Source: Paragordius varius
Taxonomy: Eukaryota; Animalia; Nematomorpha
Direction: 5' to 3'
Assembly (NCBI GenBank): GCA_964247055.1
Contig: OZ176050.1
Location: 1,798,001 to 1,862,000, forward strand
DNA: 64,000 nucleotides
Position numbers and translations under genes: made by a program. Shown piece after piece: positions 1,370-38,662 of this stretch (position 1 is the stretch's first letter; every line of letters starts with the position of its first letter). The notes beneath the pieces were generated by a model that saw only the letters and a list, made by a program, of their open reading frames with translations, did no database searches and was not told the origin of the DNA.

Positions 1370-4300
1370 AAATTATTTTTTATACATTCTCTTAGCAAGA
1401 CTACATGAAAATATAGAGATAGTTTGACAAACTCTTTCATATCCGATTTTTAGAACGATACTTTAAAAATTAATGTATAAAAGTAGTCGCATCAATACTC
1501 AAGTCAAATTTGTCCTTAAAAATGGGATATTGGTCACCGGTGAACAAAATTATTTTTTATACATTCTCTTAGTAAGACTACATCAAAATATAGAAATAGT
1601 TTGACAAACTCTTTCATATCCGATTTTTACAACGATACTTTAAAAATTAATGTATTAAAATAGTCGCATCAATACTCAAGTTAAACTTTGTCCTTAAAAA
1701 TCGGATATTGGTCACCGGTGAACAAAATTATTTTTTATACATTCTCTTAGCAAGACTACATCAAAATATAGAGATAGTTTGATTGACAAACTCTTTCATA
1801 TCCGATTTTTACAACGATACTTTAAAAATTAATGTATAAAACTAGTCGTATAAATAAATCGCATCAATACTCAAGTTAAACTTTGTCCTTAAAAATCGGA
1901 TATTGGTCACCGGTGAACAAAATTATTTTTTATACATTCTCTTAGTAGGACTACATCAAAATATAGAGATAGTTTGGCAAACTCTTTCATATCCGATTTT
2001 TACAACGATACTTTAAAAATTAATGTATAAAACTAGTCGCATCAATACTCAAGTTAAACTTTGTCCTTAAAAATCGAATATTGGTCACCGGTGAACAAAA
2101 TAATTTTTTATACATTCTCTTAGTAGGACTACATCGAAATATAGAGATAGTTTGGCAAACTCTTTCATATCCGATTTTTACAACGACACTTTAAAAATTA
2201 ATGTATAAAACTAGTCGCATGAATACTCAAGTTAAACTTTGTCCTTAAAAATCGGATATTGGTCACCGGTGATCAAAATTATTTTTTATATATTCTCTTA
2301 GCAAGACTACATCAAAATATAGAGATAGTTTGACAAACTCTTTCATATCCGATTTTTACAACGATACTTTCAAAATTAATGTATAATTTAGCATACGACA
2401 ATAAGCAACTTAAACTTTGTCTATAAAAATCGGATATTGGTCGCCGGTAAAAAAAATAATGTTTTATACATTCTCTTAGTATGACTACATCAAAATATAG
2501 AGATAGTTTGACAAACTCTTTCATATCCGATTTTTACAACGATACTTTAAAAATTAATGTATAAAACTAGTCGTATCAATACTCAAGTTTAACTTTGTCC
2601 TTAAAAATCGGATTTTGGTCACCGTTGAACAAAATTAATTTTTATACATTCTCTTAGTAAGACTATATCAAAATATAGAGATAGTTTGACAAACTCTTTA
2701 ATATCTGATTTTTACAGCGATACTTTAAAAATTAATGTATAATTTAGCATACGACAATAAGCAACTTAAACTTTGTCCTTAAAAATCGGATATTGGTCGC
2801 CGGTAAAGAAAATTATTTTATATACATTCTCTTAGTAGGACTACATCAAAATATAGAGATAGTTTGGCAAACTCTTTCATATCCGATTTTTACAACGATA
2901 CTTTAAAAATTGATGTATAAAACTTATCGCATCAATACTCAAGTTAAACTTTGTCCTTAAAAATCGGATATTGGTCACCGGTGAACAAATTTTTTATACA
3001 TTCTCTTAGTAACACTACATCAAAATATAGAGATAGTTTGACAAACTCTTTCATATCCGATTTTTACAATGATACTCTAAAAATTAATGTATAAAACTAG
3101 TCGCATCAATACTCAAGTTAAACTTTGTCCTTAAAAATCGGATATTGGTCACCGGTGAACAAAACTATTTTTTATACATTCTCTTAGTAAGACTACATCA
3201 AAATATAGAGATAGTTTGACAAACTCTTTAATCTGATTTTTACAGCGATACTTTCAAAATTATGTATAATTTAGCATACGACAATGAGCAAGTTAAACTT
3301 TGTCCTTAAAAATCGGATATTGGTCGCCGGTAAAGAAAATTATTTTTTATATCTCTTAGTAAGACTACATCAAAATATAGAGATAGTTTGACAAAATATT
3401 TCGTATTCAATTTTTAAAATGATACTTTAAAAATTAATGTATTAAACTAGTCGCATCTATACTCAAGTTAAACTTTGTCCTTAAAAATCGGATTTTGGTC
3501 ACCAGTGAACAAAATTATTTTTTATACATTCTCTTAGTAAAACTACATCAAAATGTTGAGATAGTTTGACAAACTCTATCATATCCGATTTTTACAACGA
3601 TACTTTAAAAATTAATGTATTGAACTAGTCGCATCAATACTCAAGTTAAACTTTGTCCTTAAAAATCGGATATTGGTCACCGGTGAACAAAACTAACTTC
3701 ATATATTCTCTTAGTAAGACTATATTAAAATATAGAGATAGTTTGACAAACTCTTTCATATCCGATATTTACAATACTTTAAATATTAATGTAAACTAAC
3801 TAGTCGCATCAATACTCAAGTTAAACTTTATCCTTAAAAATCGGATATTGGTCACCGGTGAACAAAATTATTTTTTATACATTCTCTTAGTATGACTACA
3901 TCAAAATATAGAGATAGTTTGACAAACTCTTTCATATCCGATTTTTACAACGATACTTTAAAAATTAATGTATAAAACTAGTCGTATCAATACTCAAGTT
4001 TAACTTTGTCCTTAAAAATCGGATTTTGGTCACCGGTGAACAAAATTAATTTTTATACATTCTCTTAGTAAGACTATATCAAAATATAGAGATAGTTTGA
4101 CAAACTCTTTAATATCTGATTTTTACAGCGATACTTTAAAATTAATGTATAATTTAGCATACGACAATAAGCAACTTAAACTTTGTCCTTAAAAATCGGA
4201 TATTGGTCGCCGGTAAAGAAAATTATTTTTTATACATTCTCTTATTAGGACTACATCAAAATATAGAGATAGTTTGGCAAACTCTTTCATATCCGATTTT

Positions 4301-34051: not shown

Positions 34052-34434
34052 TTAAAAAGATTGAAAGATTAGTAAATTATTGCCATATGAAGATTCTCGT
34101 ATTTTAAATTTCAATTTACCATCCATATATTAAACATTCATTAACAATATAATTGGAAGCAAATAATATATAAAAAATACGTGTTATTCCCTCACATCAT
34201 ATTGTTGGCCCGATGGGGCGATCTTTTTCTAAAATTATAAAAATGTTTATAATATTATTGATACCACATTGCACAAATAAAGATTGATTTTTAATAAAAT
34301 ATATATATCATCATGTATGTCCTTTTGTATTAGGCAATAAAGTGACCACTTTTATGGTATTAACCTCATATTAAAATATGATTTATGAATAATTTACATT
34401 TTTAGGGGAAAATAAATTTTCCAAAATATATCAT

Positions 34435-34709
34435 TGTTAAAAGGGTTATCATCATACGCAAATTATCCTTCTCTTTTTTAGTGCATAATACACTTTGGTC
34501 CTTGTTACGTTAAAAATATATATTACCTTGGTTGTGAATGCAAATTATTTTATTTATACTTATTATCTTTAACAACGTTTAAACCATTATCCTTGTGAAT
34601 GCAATAACCAAATTTCCTAATGTATATAAGGAATCATTGTAACACACAGAACACATTATATTATATTATTCAGTTTTGATGTTATACTAAATAAATAAAT
34701 ATATCCTTT
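34435..34709 (+). mobile_element. LTR, U3-R part (~275 bp), followed by poly(A)
   Basis: First 114 bp identical to the sequence directly after the PPT of the minus-strand pol; TATATAA at 34623-34629; TCAGT Inr-like motif at ~34670; overlapping AATAAA at 34690-34699; A-run at 34710-34731. Confidence 0.85.
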
Positions 34710-34730
34710 AAAAAAAAAAAAAAAAAAAAA

Positions 34731-34844
34731 ATAATTTGCATTCACAACCAAGGTAATATATATTTTTAACGTAACAAGGACCAAAGTGTATTATGCACTA
34801 AAAAAGAGAAGGATAATTTGCGTATGATGATAACCCTTTTAACA
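34731..34844 (-). mobile_element. 3' LTR stub (first 114 bp) of the minus-strand gypsy element
   Basis: Starts TGTTAAAAGGG immediately after the PPT; exact reverse complement of 34435-34548. Confidence 0.9.
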
Positions 34845-34858
34845 TACCTTCTTCCTTA
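34845..34858 (-). promoter_or_regulatory. Polypurine tract (plus-strand primer site)
   Basis: Minus strand reads TAAGGAAGAAGGTA|TGTT, overlapping the pol stop codon and abutting the LTR TG. Confidence 0.85.
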
Positions 34859-37261
34859 AGCTTGATATCGGTCGGGTGGCTTTCGGGATCTAATCGGGTA
34901 CCGGCGAGTTGTGGTAGGAGAAGTGTCACTTGTTTGCACAGGAGTATTCTCACTTGAAGGCGCACTTTCTGATTCCGGATTCTCCTGGATGTTTTCAGGG
35001 GTTCTTATTTCATGTTCCGTGGGATGTTTTCGGAGGTTATTATCATTGTTGTTTAAGTTGTTGGTTAAGTTTTTAGTCTTTTCCTCACTGTTATTATCAT
35101 TGTTGTTTAAGTTGTTGTTTAAGTTTTTAGTCTTTTCCTCACTTCTCCCTTCTTCTCCTTCGGCCGACCAATCCATGCGATTCCTTAATTGATCAGCATG
35201 TTTGCGGATGATTTTGCCATTGTCGTTGACATTGTACGATAACCATCCCGTTCTGTCGACGATTTGTCCCTCCCTCCAACCAGAACACAATTCATTCTTG
35301 ATATATACTTTTTGCCCCTTTTCAAACTCCTGCGGAATGTCGGGAGTATCCATGAACTCGTTGGGTTTCGTTTTCATCCATGTTAATGGGCTTTGCATAG
35401 TTCTTTTTAAAAACAAATGCGCGGGAGTCTCCTTCGTAGAACTGTGATGCGTGTTTCGGTAAGCCCATAAGATTTGGTTTAATCTTCGTACTGGGTCTGC
35501 GGAAAGGTCTGCGGAAAGTGGGGTTGACATTGAATAATGATTTTTTAGAGTGTAAATTACCCTCTCTACCAACCCATTTGTTCGGGGGTGGTAGGGAGCT
35601 GATGTTACGTGTTTTATATTAGAGGAAGCTAAAGTTCTCTCAAACTCCCCCGATTTAAAATATGAGCCGTTATCAGTAACCACCATTTTTGGGTACCCAT
35701 ACCGGCAAAAACAGGTTTCCAAAAACTTAAGGATATTACCGGTATTCACAGAACGTAACGTTTCTACCTCCACCCAGCGGGTGCAATGATCAATTAGTAC
35801 CACCCAGTATAAATTGTCAATGGGTCCAGCGATATCTAGGTGGAGCCGTTCCCATAAGGTTGTATTCTCGTTCCATTGATAGGTGGGATTTTCGGGTATA
35901 TTTGGGCGCAGCCTTTGACAATTTTGGCAACTACGCACCCATTTATCGATATCTTGGCTCAACCCGGGCCAATAAACCTTTTCACGGCTTAATAGTTTCA
36001 TGGCTTGTATTCCCGGATGGCCACTATGCAGGTACCTTAAAATATCTGGCTTAATTTTGTTCGGGATTATTACCCGATCTCCCACAAATAATAGACCGTA
36101 TGCATCCTCAATTTCATTTTTTATTGCTATGAAAGGCTTGACCAGGGGGTCCGTCCAATTATTAGACCTTAGGGCTACTTTTAACTTTGCTATAGTAGGA
36201 TCCTTCATAGACTCTTGATAGATAATTTCTCTATTTAAATTTAATTCGTTGGACCAAATCAAATGAACATTGCTACTTTCATCATCTTTCTCAAACGCCA
36301 TCGGCTCCTGGTTTTCAATGGGGAGTCTCGATAGGCAGTCAGCTATGTTTTCTGTACCAGGGTGATATTCTATGTTGAAATCGAATACCGATGTTCTAGT
36401 TATCCAGCGTACTAGTTTACAATTATTAATTTTACTTAGATCTCTTTGAGGCCCAAATAGTTTCACTAGAGGTTTGTGGTCCGTTTGTATTATAAATTTC
36501 CTGCCATACAAAAAGGTTTTAAACTTCTCTAACGCTATTAGGATAGATTTTGCTTCTCGCTCAATTACTGAATAGTTTCCTTCAGCCTGAGAGCATTTTT
36601 TTGACGTGTAGGCGATCGGGCGATTACCCGCTGTTGTTCTATGTGATAAAATAGCACCGTATCCCGACATTGACGCGTCGGTTTCCAAGACTATAGGTAG
36701 TTTGGGATTATACGGATGCAAGGAACTACTCTGGCAGATCAAGTCTTTAGCTTTTTTGAATATCGAATCATGCGTTAGCGTCCAACACCACTTTTGTTTG
36801 TTACCTGCTAATTTATGTAGTTCTCCCATTAAAATGCTTAGGGAAGGGATGAATTTTGCATGAAAATTAAGTAAACCCAAAAATGATCTAAGAGTGGTTT
36901 TGTTGGTCGGGGTCGGGCACTCTTGGATGGCTTTAATTTTGTTTGGGGAGGGCTTAATGCAATTTTCAGAAATAATGTGACCAAGATATTCTACAGATGG
37001 TTGAAAAAGTTTTATTTTATCTTTGCGCAATTTTAATCCCATTGTCTCCAATTTGGTAAATACCTTTATTAGGTTGTCCTTGTGCTTTGTCTCGGTTTCT
37101 CCTGTCACGATAACGTCATCTAAATAAACGGCTGTACCTGCGCAATCTTTTAATAACTCGTCCATTATTTGTTGAAAGAAACTGGGGGCGCAATTTAACC
37201 CGAAAGGCAATCGTTTATACTTATAAAACCCCTTATGTGTCGAAATTGTTAGTAAGTGCTG
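34856..37261 (-). CDS. pol: Ty3/gypsy Pol, 5'-truncated: RT C-terminal half, RNase H, integrase
   Basis: Uninterrupted frame: QHLLTISTHKGFYKYKRLPFG (upstream of the track's TTG start), YLDD, LETDAS (RNase H), HSGH...CQNC zinc finger, LHLDIAGP / VTDNGSYF / NGLVER (DDE). RT-IN order is gypsy-type. No gag, protease, PBS or 5' LTR. Confidence 0.93.
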   Translation of the reverse strand, partial: QHLLTISTHKGFYKYKRLPFGLNCAPSFFQQIMDELLKDCAGTAVYLDDVIVTGETETKHKDNLIKVFTKLETMGLKLRKDKIKLFQPSVEYLGHIISENCIKPSPNKIKAIQECPTPTNKTTLRSFLGLLNFHAKFIPSLSILMGELHKLAGNKQKWCWTLTHDSIFKKAKDLICQSSSLHPYNPKLPIVLETDASMSGYGAILSHRTTAGNRPIAYTSKKCSQAEGNYSVIEREAKSILIALEKFKTFLYGRKFIIQTDHKPLVKLFGPQRDLSKINNCKLVRWITRTSVFDFNIEYHPGTENIADCLSRLPIENQEPMAFEKDDESSNVHLIWSNELNLNREIIYQESMKDPTIAKLKVALRSNNWTDPLVKPFIAIKNEIEDAYGLLFVGDRVIIPNKIKPDILRYLHSGHPGIQAMKLLSREKVYWPGLSQDIDKWVRSCQNCQRLRPNIPENPTYQWNENTTLWERLHLDIAGPIDNLYWVVLIDHCTRWVEVETLRSVNTGNILKFLETCFCRYGYPKMVVTDNGSYFKSGEFERTLASSNIKHVTSAPYHPRTNGLVERVIYTLKNHYSMSTPLSADLSADPVRRLNQILWAYRNTHHSSTKETPAHLFLKRTMQSPLTWMKTKPNEFMDTPDIPQEFEKGQKVYIKNELCSGWREGQIVDRTGWLSYNVNDNGKIIRKHADQLRNRMDWSAEGEEGRSEEKTKNLNNNLNNNDNNSEEKTKNLTNNLNNNDNNLRKHPTEHEIRTPENIQENPESESAPSSENTPVQTSDTSPTTTRRYPIRSRKPPDRYQA
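35037..35143. repeat. 54-bp in-frame tandem duplication in the integrase C-terminal tail
   Basis: Encodes EEKTKNL(N/T)NNLNNNDNN twice; units start at 35037 and 35091. Confidence 0.9.
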
Positions 37262-38662
37262 AATATTAACTATTTGTCAATCATTTATGTCATAAACTAT
37301 AATAAGAATTTTTTGATAAAAATTAAATGTTTAGATTGGTCTTCCACAATAACCGAGACTGCGCTAAGAATAATTATTATATATTAAATTGTATAAAAAA
37401 GATTATTTCTAAATAAAACTTTCCTCACAAATTGTATCATGTGAGATTTATTGTAGTGATATAAGGTAGTTAGACGTTTTTTAATAAATTCAAAATTTAT
37501 TAATACAGAAGGTGGATTCATTATTAAATAAATTTTAATGTGCGAAAAGTCTAGGAAATTGCTGAATGCATGTTATGATATTAAAATGAAAATGTAACAA
37601 AACCTATATAATTCAATTTTTTCCCAGGATTTTTACACAAATATATGTCTTTTCGATAATATTCTCAACGAATTTTGCGAATTTTCATCCGTGAACCTCG
37701 CTCTATATTTTGATTTTATTATACCAATAAATCAAAAATTGACATCTATAATAGTGAAACATGGTTGTCAATTTAAGCACGTTTATGTATTATCCCTATT
37801 CTCAACATAAACTTATATCCCTAGTTTTTACATTGTTGCATATTTCACTCAGCTATTTACGAATTTCACTTCATTTCATTCCATACAATAACTTTATTAC
37901 GATTAAATAATCATTTATTATTGATCTTTAACAAAAGAAATTTTTTGATATTCTTGGTCATATCTTAGGCCACGTCGAGATAAATTTTCGCCAACTTTTA
38001 TACAATTTTGATCTTAACTACTTCGGGCACACTGTTATATGATCTACTAATTTTATAATATTTTTACCTCGCTTCTTGTTAGTTATTACGTCTAAAGCAA
38101 ACCATTATGAGCTTATTCTTTATTTTGTTAATTAAGAGATGAATAGTATTTGACTGGTTTATTTTTAAATGAACCTTTAGGGCAGTGATGATCTATACCA
38201 TTTATATCTGTTTTTAATCATATATTCATGTTTTACCATTAATGTTTGGCTTTTATAAATTATGTTATATTTTGAATAAAATTAATATGTACAAGAATAA
38301 TAACTCGTTAATGGCGGGCTCCTTGTAATTTTTCGAGGAAATAATACGCAAATTACCTAAAGAATAAAAAAAATTGTAACATAATCTTTTCGTCCTTGTC
38401 GTAATCAGATATTCTAAATTTCTGTTTTATTAGGCACCTCCTTGATTACTAAGAACCCTTATTCAATCGTAGGCTAATGTAACGATCTCCATATTTTGCT
38501 GTTATAACATAATTAGTCCCAAAAATTATATTCATCTTTGAATATATTTAATTTTATTTTTATGTGATTTGCGTATTATTCCCAGGAAGAGTTACAAAGA
38601 GCCGGCCATCGAGTTATTATTCTAATATTAATATTATTTACTATTTTATAACATAATTTTTA

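Follow-up and report, generated by a model that had tools for sequence, protein, structure and literature searches.

We describe in Paragordius varius (Nematomorpha) a recent, dead-on-arrival copy of a gypsy-type retrotransposon that carries its own poly(A) tail in its interior, joined there to the inverted 3′ half of the element. The copy lies in a window of 64,000 nucleotides (contig OZ176050.1, positions 1,798,001 to 1,862,000), which is the whole stretch of DNA analysed and to which all coordinates below refer. We think it probable, at roughly 80%, that the insert is genuine and very recent, and that it arose when integrase inserted an aberrant fold-back cDNA derived from a 4.6-kb Ty3/gypsy element. 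We infer that the strand switches behind it occurred during reverse transcription, as well as the order in which they took place.

Structure of the insertion

The insert spans 34435-37279, i.e. 2845 bp, or 2850 bp with one copy of its target site duplication (TSD). It opens with LTR 1-275 (U3-R) and a run of 22 A (A22). Then LTR 1-117, the PPT and 2.4 kb of pol follow in reverse complement, and a short U5 end closes the insert on the right. All the elements listed in a preliminary description of this DNA are present where it had placed them. The features are as follows.

34430-34434: left TSD copy, ATCAT (sequence; empty-allele contigs)
34435-34709, + strand: LTR 1-275, U3 and R up to the poly(A) cleavage site (identity to the reference LTRs)
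34690-34699, + strand: two overlapping AATAAA poly(A) signals, AATAAATAAA (sequence)
34710-34731, + strand: A22 run, read as the poly(A) tail of the transcript (without counterpart in any canonical LTR)
34728-34844, - strand: inverted LTR 1-117 (U3), exact over 117 nt; inverted repeat I1
34845-34857, - strand: two-base spacer (TA) and inverted PPT (AAGGAAGAAGG); the same sequence lies 5′ of every 3′ LTR of the family
34858-37262, - strand: inverted internal region, element position 4289 down to 1899 (BLAST to the coordinate-reference copy; Pfam)
35036-35143: two 54-bp tandem repeat units in the inverted internal region; the number of units differs among copies
37263-37279, + strand: last 17 nt of U5 (LTR 283-299), ATATTAACTATTTGTCA, ending in CA (match to the canonical 299-bp LTR)
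37280-37284: right TSD copy, ATCAT (sequence; empty-allele contigs)

The left LTR begins with TG, as TGTTAAAAGG, at 34435. The A22 stands in place of LTR positions 276-282 and the remaining U5, and its start is 10 and 14 nt downstream of the two AATAAA hexamers. At the junction of A22 with the inverted U3 (J1), the innermost four T/A bases are common to the A-run and the inverted LTR and represent a microhomology. The inverted LTR had been described as an exact copy of positions 1-114; the exactness holds, whereas the length must be corrected to 117 nt, of which the last four are those shared with the A-run. The reverse-complemented PPT reads CCTTCTTCCTT (34847-34857). An open frame of 784 codons on the minus strand (34856-37210) encodes the C-terminal portion of RT followed by RNase H and by the zinc finger and core of integrase, with Pfam matches in the order RVT_1, RT_RNaseH, Integrase_H2C2 and rve. 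The junction between pol and U5 (J2) shows an imperfect homology, ATA(T/G), at three of four positions. The U5 end at 37263-37279 forms the right integrase end in the same orientation as the left LTR, and both LTR termini of the insert adjoin host DNA and the TSD. Because gag, protease, part of RT and the PBS are missing, the copy is a dead end. It does not represent a new replication pathway.

The parent family

The parent is a 4.6-kb Ty3/gypsy element (Metaviridae) with 299-bp LTRs and 5-bp TSDs, the latter found at eight insertions of the family. Its domains follow the order PR-RT-RNase H-integrase, the protease being seen upstream in a full-length copy, and it has TG...CA LTRs, a PBS at the 5′ LTR, a PPT at the 3′ LTR and a short TSD of fixed length. 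The PBS, TGGCGCGG, has 8 nt and matches the 3′ end of tRNA-Ser(AGA). Elements of the DIRS/Ngaro type have a tyrosine recombinase and no TSD, whereas here the integrase has a DDE core (rve) and the TSD measures 5 bp. As coordinate reference we used a copy of 4601 bp with two LTRs. The LTR part of the window insert is 100% identical to both of them, and the internal part is 99.1-99.2% identical to that copy (6 mismatches and 2 gaps in BLAST). Given the identity of the LTR part and a site that is empty in three other samples, the insertion is young.

The empty site

Contigs from these three samples (four runs: X7, X3, X6 and X2) join 34429 to 37280 with a single ATCAT, skipping exactly 2850 bp, with six letters shared at the joint. 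The flanks of 34430 and 37284 are adjacent there, as in the empty allele that the preliminary description had proposed to look for. The 5-bp TSD and the empty allele with its single ATCAT show that the insertion is a true integrase event, as had been claimed.

The reads and contigs of the four runs, all from other individuals, contain neither J1 nor J2, the contigs break at 34699-34742, and the internal structure is known from the assembly alone. One might suspect a chimera of assembly or sequencing, produced by amplification or as a long-read inverted-repeat artefact, within a real or spurious insertion. Inverted chimeras are indeed a known artefact of long reads. But a chimera would not yield a 5-bp TSD at a site where the empty allele shows ATCAT only once, nor would it put a homopolymer at the mRNA cleavage site or stop at the exact U5 terminus. 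Moreover, an analogous structure with its own TSD stands on another contig (C10), in an older subfamily. We regard a chimera as very improbable.

The poly(A) tail

Our data support the earlier reading of the A-run as an added mRNA tail and not as LTR sequence, with predicted cleavage site and R boundaries, since canonical LTRs lack the run, since it starts 10-14 nt after AATAAA and since the copy on C10 has an A-run at the same site. The check for an A22 in the family's LTRs gave a clear answer: no canonical 299-bp LTR contains an A-run. At the cleavage point these LTRs read CCTTT-ATAATTTATATTAACTATTTGTCA, with 24 nt of U5 after CCTTT leading up to the PBS. The poly(A) tail is never copied in normal LTR replication.

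A poly(A) tract may also be left by LINE-type target-primed retrocopying of an mRNA, here into an existing solo LTR and possibly by twin priming. LINE-1 twin priming and LINE-mediated pseudogenes of LTR elements, such as the HERV-W retrocopies, have the tail at the end of the insert, next to a long and variable TSD. They resemble the window insert in that a polyadenylated element mRNA was copied and an inverted segment or a tail retained. Yet, the window insert lacks a terminal poly(A) and a TSD of variable length (7-20 bp): its A-run lies mid-insert, away from the TSD, and runs on directly from R of the outer LTR on the + strand, while the inner fragment, read in its own sense, ends in T22 and not in A22. 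The TSD has 5 bp, as elsewhere in the family, and the termini are U3 and U5, TG and CA, whereas LINE ends are not TG...CA. Finally, the empty allele has no LTR, which implies that the sampled haplotypes did not hold a solo LTR before the insertion. We find this origin hardly credible.

Switch points and mechanism

The switch was correctly placed at a T-rich patch of U3, where the tail finds 4 nt of exact A/T complementarity, or 7 of 8 when the next bases are counted. Few positions offer as much, only about 1% of those in the RNA (at least 4 nt of T complementarity to a tail is expected at 0.96% of element RNA positions, or 0.0096 per position). The RNA has a better site for an A-tail, the U6 run at U3 40-45. 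Folding of U3-R-A22 gave no stable helix between tail and U3 (z-score +0.54), and their pairing is thermodynamically negligible.

Taken in full, the preliminary description had the tail snapping back in cis onto U3 and priming the entire minus strand without tRNA, with RNase H setting the TG end and a cryptic CA of pol serving as the other. The tail does lie at the mRNA cleavage site and does meet a T-rich patch, a second tail-containing fold-back copy exists on C10, and RTs are known to self-prime on RNA in vitro (PMC1876213). But this scheme is at odds with the right end of the insert. Positions 37262-37279 had been considered as RT sequence or filler; 37263-37279 are the last 17 nt of the canonical LTR (283-299), a genuine U5 terminus cut exactly at the U5/PBS border. 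This refutes the cryptic CA and calls for a U5 template of minus polarity, i.e. tRNA-primed strong-stop DNA. An end at this very border corresponds to the 5′ terminus of minus-strand strong-stop DNA made from the tRNA and implies that tRNA priming took part, so that our data do not support a tRNA-independent route. The missing tail/U3 helix also speaks against this scheme, for which, in addition, 18-22 nt would need to be the entire tail. We consider the scheme as a whole improbable.

Under the reading that we favour, of a fold-back cDNA completed with strong-stop DNA, a transcript polyadenylated 10-14 nt past AATAAA would enter a strand switch within the virus-like particle, its A-tail pairing with U3 114-121, a U-rich patch. 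This would leave U3-R-A22 head-on to antisense U3(1-117)-PPT-pol. About 2.4 kb further on (element position 1899), this strand would switch again at a short homology and join a tRNA-primed minus-strand strong-stop DNA of 17 nt, the source of the genuine U5 terminus. The resulting molecule, which would end in U3 (TG) on one side and in U5 (CA) on the other, could then be inserted by integrase, duplicating the 5 bp ATCAT.

The tail may have acted as a primer, by snap-back or in trans, or as an acceptor for T-ended nascent plus-sense DNA. The two models are about equally likely and predict an identical junction. Both have awkward finishing steps, since one must replace an RNA segment and the other trim a long 3′ overhang. 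More tentatively, one might speculate that the 3′-OH of the tail primes minus-strand DNA in vivo, with strong-stop DNA as second-strand primer and donor of the LTR end, and with the fold-back cDNAs integrated in the germ line; we see this as possible, with the odds somewhat against it.

Aberrant relatives in the family

Genome-wide pattern searches for LTR-A(n) junctions, also suggested earlier, found a single one besides the window, on C10. This copy begins with the TSD CTTAT and LTR 1-274, followed by A8; then come the complete internal region in inverted orientation, as far as the PBS, and inverted U3 1-12 ahead of the second CTTAT. Its A8 lies at the same cleavage site as the A22 of the window and is followed by inverted PPT, pol and gag. 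It is older than the window copy and its tail junction has only 2 nt of complementarity.

About a third of the non-solo copies examined (10-11 of about 32) have strand-switch junctions, with overlaps of 3-14 nt across copies. Besides the window, six rearranged copies, five of them with strand switches, have verified 5-bp TSDs. One copy joins the U3 T-run (38-45) to an internal A6 run of pol, an internal analogue of the tail junction. Several aberrant copies hold bases copied from the primer tRNA beyond the 8-nt PBS, a signature of reverse transcription. In one of them there are 32 nt of tRNA-Ser(AGA)+CCA with a single mismatch, at A58, an m1A58-type miscopy. Sister copies include U3/U3 palindromes, and inverted U3 termini directly abut TSDs.

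These relatives bear on the idea that a normal full-length copy or a solo LTR inserted here was later inverted and partly deleted in the chromosome, through end joining or a template switch in replication, A22 being filler. The outer ends and TSD of the insert are those of one + oriented LTR, and DNA replication is known to produce fold-back inversions at short inverted homologies. But the filler must be pure A22 exactly at the poly(A) cleavage site, and the same coincidence is needed again in the copy on C10. The tRNA-derived bases of the sister copies, and their inverted U3 termini at TSDs, can arise only before integration. The youth of the insertion, with its LTR identical to the reference and its site empty in other samples, is also at odds with later rearrangement, to which we give very little credence.

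Relation to known processes

In retroviral autointegration, an LTR terminus becomes joined to an internal site, with duplication of internal bases and the formation of circles. Its products resemble the window insert in holding a stretch of the element's own internal DNA in inverted orientation. However, no LTR terminus of the insert lies at an internal cDNA site: both face host DNA and TSD, and the tail is at the inversion point. In elements of the Tf1/sushi type, the RNA 5′ end folded onto the PBS self-primes as the normal route. This is also a case of LTR retrotransposon RNA priming on itself, but the primer of our family is tRNA-Ser(AGA) and the tail junction is an accident.

Self-priming is documented in vitro for HIV-1 strong-stop DNA, in a TAR-dependent manner (PMC4668388), and for RNA, which RTs can turn into primer-independent cDNA (PMC1876213). 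In both cases, as in the window, an inverted duplication results when a 3′ end is extended after folding back or after pairing with a strand of like polarity. Yet, these products arise in the test tube or are dead ends, and nucleocapsid normally suppresses them, whereas the window product became a two-ended duplex integrated in the germ line.

Template switches that depend on microsimilarity occur in LTR-retrotransposon particles, as in 'LTR-mediated retroposition' and Ty1 pseudogene formation (Tan et al. 2016, PMC5131818). There as here, chimeric particle cDNA is made with short homology at each switch, keeps its LTR ends and is inserted by integrase with the TSD of the family. Those switches keep polarity, from RNA to RNA, and capture foreign mRNA, whereas both switches in the window reverse polarity. 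The element's own RNA serves as partner there, host sequence is absent, and the junction contains the poly(A) tail itself. A sister copy (L050) is a classical chimera that captured Argonaute (L1-PAZ-L2) and agrees with the definition of LTR-mediated retroposition. The window copy is a variant of known template-switch products.

Significance

Integrated copies that keep failed reverse-transcription intermediates are rare natural records of events in retrotransposon particles. The window copy tells us that a poly(A) tail can enter cDNA and that a product with two polarity switches can still acquire two integrase-competent ends. Together with the tail copy on C10, the U3/U3 palindromes, the tRNA-Ser read-through with its m1A58-type miscopy and the Argonaute capture, it forms a natural data set from which one can learn the pause sites of RT, the ends that it jumps to and the structures that integrase accepts.

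The window copy carries a 117-bp inverted repeat of U3. If transcribed, it is plausible that such fold-back copies could form hairpin RNA, a putative source of small RNAs against the family. If the tail's 3′-OH did prime minus-strand DNA, the window copy would be one product of a reverse transcription that is unusually promiscuous as to strands and that also makes U3-ended palindromic mini-elements, and these would be ready-made hairpin-RNA loci against the family.

Results

The insert and its empty allele

The insert (window 34435-37279), a fold-back copy of a Ty3/gypsy element, contains every element that the preliminary description had read from the sequence.

Features of the insert and its flanks (window coordinates)
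34430-34434: left copy of the target-site duplication (TSD), ATCAT
from 34435, + strand: LTR, starting TGTTAAAAGG
34690-34699: AATAAATAAA
34710-34731: A-run of exactly 22 A
up to 34844, inverted: exact reverse complement of the LTR start
beyond 34844: inverted polypurine tract (PPT)
34856-37210, minus strand: open frame of 784 codons
37263-37279, same orientation as the left LTR: U5 terminus ATATTAACTATTTGTCA, equal to LTR 283-299
37280-37284: right copy of the TSD, ATCAT, with the insert's CA end directly before it

The inverted match to the LTR start is exact, as described, and longer than first given: it measures 117 nt, the final four bases (TTTT/AAAA) being common to the A-run. The Pfam domains of the 784-codon frame run from the C-terminal part of the reverse transcriptase (RT) through RNase H and the integrase zinc finger to the integrase core, which is the Ty3/gypsy order. 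When mapped on a 4601-bp copy with two identical 299-bp LTRs and TSD TAAAT, used as coordinate reference only, the insert consists of 1-275, A22, antisense 4419-1899 (U3 1-117, PPT and pol) and 283-299. Its outer ends, one of U3 and one of U5, are both canonical. The right end had been taken for a cryptic CA; its terminal 17 nt are LTR 283-299, i.e. the true U5 end, which removes the cryptic CA and settles the nature of these bases. At the junction of inverted pol with U5 (37262/37263) the homology is imperfect (...ATAT in U5, ATAG in pol), and we rejected a SNP that would give perfect ATAT microhomology since nearly all copies examined have GATAG at this site. Elsewhere in the insert, at 35036-35143, two 54-bp units stand in tandem close to the 3' end of the internal region; the number of units varies among family copies.

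Twelve public sequencing runs contain much of the stretch. We compared four of these, as Logan contigs from three samples, one run being filed under a different organism label. All four have a contig joining 34429 to 37280, so that the flanks are adjacent with a single ATCAT, as the check proposed in the preliminary description had asked. This joint skips 2850 bp, i.e. the 2845-bp insert plus one ATCAT, and six letters are common to its two sides; one such contig, of 187 nt, has 99 nt on one side and 88 nt on the other. The empty allele proves a genuine insertion event that duplicated the target. The four runs carry many differences from the window in the flanks and hence represent other haplotypes. 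In their contigs we saw neither the junction of the A-run with inverted U3 nor that of inverted pol with U5, and it is accordingly from the assembly, backed by further arguments, that the internal structure is taken. One might suspect an assembly chimera, at least for the inner junctions, but a chimera can neither make a TSD around a site with one ATCAT in the empty allele nor end at the exact U5 terminus, and we regard it as very improbable.

Two side observations come from the public data. Runs X1-X9, spread over six or more organism codes, contain 60-70% of the words of the stretch, and in one run of a second organism label the empty site is present at low depth; this would fit a parasite sequenced along with its hosts, or close sister species. 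Besides, only two of the four runs compared, both of a single sample (X7 and X3, sample S1), contain a joint from 34557 to 36862, linking U3 position 123, just beyond the T-rich patch, to inverted pol. The 30-mer of this joint was not found in the assembly; the joint may come from a further, polymorphic copy of fold-back type or be an artefact of short matches.

The A-run derives from the poly(A) tail

We found at least 42 matches to the family LTR in the 110.6-Mb assembly. The canonical copies all have the order ...AATAAATAAATATATCCTTT, then ATAATTTATATTAACTATTTGTCA, then AC-TGGCGCGG..., and no canonical LTR contains the A-run, whose presence there would have counted against the preliminary description. 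Only the 25 exact matches to the R-end pattern are usable here, since with mismatches allowed chance dominates (5,400 matches, against ~3,950 for the control).

The preliminary description had suggested a genome search for other LTR-A(n)-inverted-LTR junctions at the T-rich site. Using the R end followed by at least 7 A, or at least 9 A within 2-14 nt, we found tail junctions genome-wide in the window and on contig C10 only, the remaining matches being unrelated. The second copy (L032) belongs to an older subfamily. In the orientation of the window it reads CTTAT, LTR 1-274, A8, an antisense segment, antisense U3 12-1 and CTTAT; the antisense segment takes in U3 1-2, PPT and the entire internal region and stops at the fifth base of the primer-binding site (PBS). 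Both of its integrase ends are U3, and two of the eight A may be U3 bases 3-4. Its cleavage site is identical to that of the window (CCTT/A), and its acceptor position is different. Two independent events sharing one donor position of ~4,600 possible leave the poly(A) tail as the only sensible source of the A-runs in both copies.

Two other origins of the structure can be weighed at this point. A rearrangement after integration is about as improbable as the chimera: it needs a filler of pure A22 placed precisely at the cleavage site, and such an A-run coincidence twice. A LINE-type retrocopy within a solo LTR is more improbable still: the outer R runs straight into the tail, the inner fragment in its own sense ends in T22, and the empty allele has no LTR.

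Strand switches and tRNA bases across the family

We compared the internal region with the genome by BLAST and inspected 20 fetched loci. Polarity-reversing junctions occur in 10-11 of ~32 non-solo copies.

Aberrant copies of the family (loci in assembly G000; C1, C2, C5 and C10 are its contigs)
L032; G000:C10:2578750-2582882; older subfamily, fold-back with tail; TSD CTTAT on both sides
L055; C5:4758798-4762899; one LTR plus 18-nt inverted U3 end, 7-nt overlap; TSD CAACC
L046; G000:C1:9459769-9461910; ends U3 1-45 and inverted U3 3-67; TSD GCCGT
L048; C2:10299752-10300396; 645-bp near-palindrome, U3 1-24 at both ends; TSD ACAAC
L005/L007; C1:14936004-14936623; tail-to-tail LTR palindrome through the PBS; TSD GACAC
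L059; G000:C1:8284787-8286283, locus positions 988-1036; left end at U5 position 284; TSD ACAGC
L045; G000:C5:11113870-11118623; after the 5' LTR and a 17-nt PBS/tRNA copy, inverted element 1022-1510, then 538 onwards
L050; G000:C2:12603447-12607260; gag, protease and first half of RT replaced by an Argonaute L1-PAZ-L2 fragment

Four further copies (L046, L055, L048 and L005/L007) combine polarity switches with perfect 5-bp TSDs, three of them having U3 at both ends, and their junctions overlap by 3-14 nt. L046 has three internal switches, which overlap by 8, 3 and 14 nt, and links the T-run at U3 38-45 with an A6 run inside pol. A/T pairing of this kind is also what the tail junction shows, so that the tail acts as the longest A-run of the RNA. 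L045 builds a hairpin of ~490 bp. We rejected an amplification of the 645-bp palindromic derivative (L048), which is single copy.

Several aberrant copies carry extra bases beyond the 8-nt PBS (TGGCGCGG) that are absent from native elements, whose PBS is complementary to the tRNA over 8 nt only. The extra bases correspond to the 3' end of tRNA-Ser(AGA) genes of the same genome. In L059 the U5 end is followed by 32 nt of tRNA-Ser(AGA) plus CCA, with a single mismatch, opposite A58; other aberrant copies have 2-7 tRNA-derived bases (TC, TCGAT). Position 58 of tRNAs is commonly 1-methyladenosine, which RTs miscopy, and the mismatch is direct evidence that the mature primer was reverse-transcribed. 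Since the tRNA-derived bases were copied from the mature primer, the rearrangements predate integration. A rearrangement after integration can account neither for these bases nor for the inverted U3 termini that lie right beside TSDs in sister copies. The U5 pieces start at 283 in the window and at 284 in L059, so a discrete minus-strand species of 16-17 nt has been seen twice.

The Argonaute fragment of L050, open over 261 codons, is joined to the element at two places, one following 10 nt of the PBS region, the other near element position 1885. Three independent breakpoints fall within a 15-nt stretch of the RT region (element 1885-1899): the window's pol/U5 junction (37262), this capture and the 5' truncation of another copy, L051 (G000:C2:8882794). 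The site may be a hot spot of RT pausing or RNA breakage; a rough estimate of chance is ~0.07.

Discussion

In the window copy, which is young and was integrated with the TSD of its family, the cDNA encloses the tail of a transcript that had been cleaved at LTR 275/276. We infer that polarity was switched at both of the copy's junctions, and that this took place in the particle. At the joint of tail and antisense U3 there are 4 nt of A/T complementarity, 7 of 8 counting the next bases; the chance of at least 4 nt of tail complementarity is about 1% per position.

Two readings lead to the same DNA. Under the first, the tail would be a primer: its 3'-OH would pair with UUUU at U3 114-117 of the same or a co-packaged RNA and prime 2.4 kb of minus-strand DNA. 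This strand and a 17-nt tRNA-primed strong-stop DNA would then pair at their 3' ends and each be extended on the other, providing the U5 end and the second strand, and the RNA segment would have to be replaced afterwards. Under the second, the tail would be a template: plus-sense DNA ending ...ATTATTTT at U3 117 would pair inside the tail of an uncopied RNA and copy T(n), R and U3 in antisense, after which a PPT-primed plus strand would copy the whole strand. The tail as primer needs early, abundant templates only, and accounts for segments ending at natural template ends in both tail copies; the tail as template accounts for tails as short as 22 and 6-8 nt and has its parallel in the T-run/A-run joint of L046. 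As a primer, the tail would have had to be very short to give a junction of 22 nt. RNA folding yielded no stable pairing in cis: in both the MFE and the centroid fold of U3-R-A22 the tail is unpaired. Duplex energies of A22 along the RNA are ~0, and 199 windows outscore the patch used. Hence we reject a snap-back in cis through stable RNA structure; local microhomology alone explains the site, and the two readings are about equally likely.

The earlier interpretation of the insert is partly supported, as a fold-back error involving poly(A), without its cryptic CA and its independence from tRNA: in either reading, tRNA priming follows from the exact U5 terminus. A transcription start at LTR 283/284 would make the 17-nt piece a complete strong-stop DNA; a TATA box near LTR position 188 counts for a start upstream of 283/284.

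Microsimilarity-dependent template switches occur in LTR particles (PMC5131818), and their classical form is also found in this family, in the Argonaute capture. Reverse transcriptases are also able to self-prime (PMC4668388, PMC1876213). The window copy differs from both in having a polarity reversal with the tail at the junction, and in that its product was completed and integrated in the germ line. In the literature searched in full text, where older retrovirology is thinly covered, we found no description of an LTR-element cDNA that had been integrated with a tail inside it where the polarity switches. We regard the copy as a variation on documented processes and no new category.

The insertion is real, polymorphic and a dead end, in a family unusually rich in fold-back errors of reverse transcription. 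It stands as the record of one such error, in which the poly(A) tail was involved.
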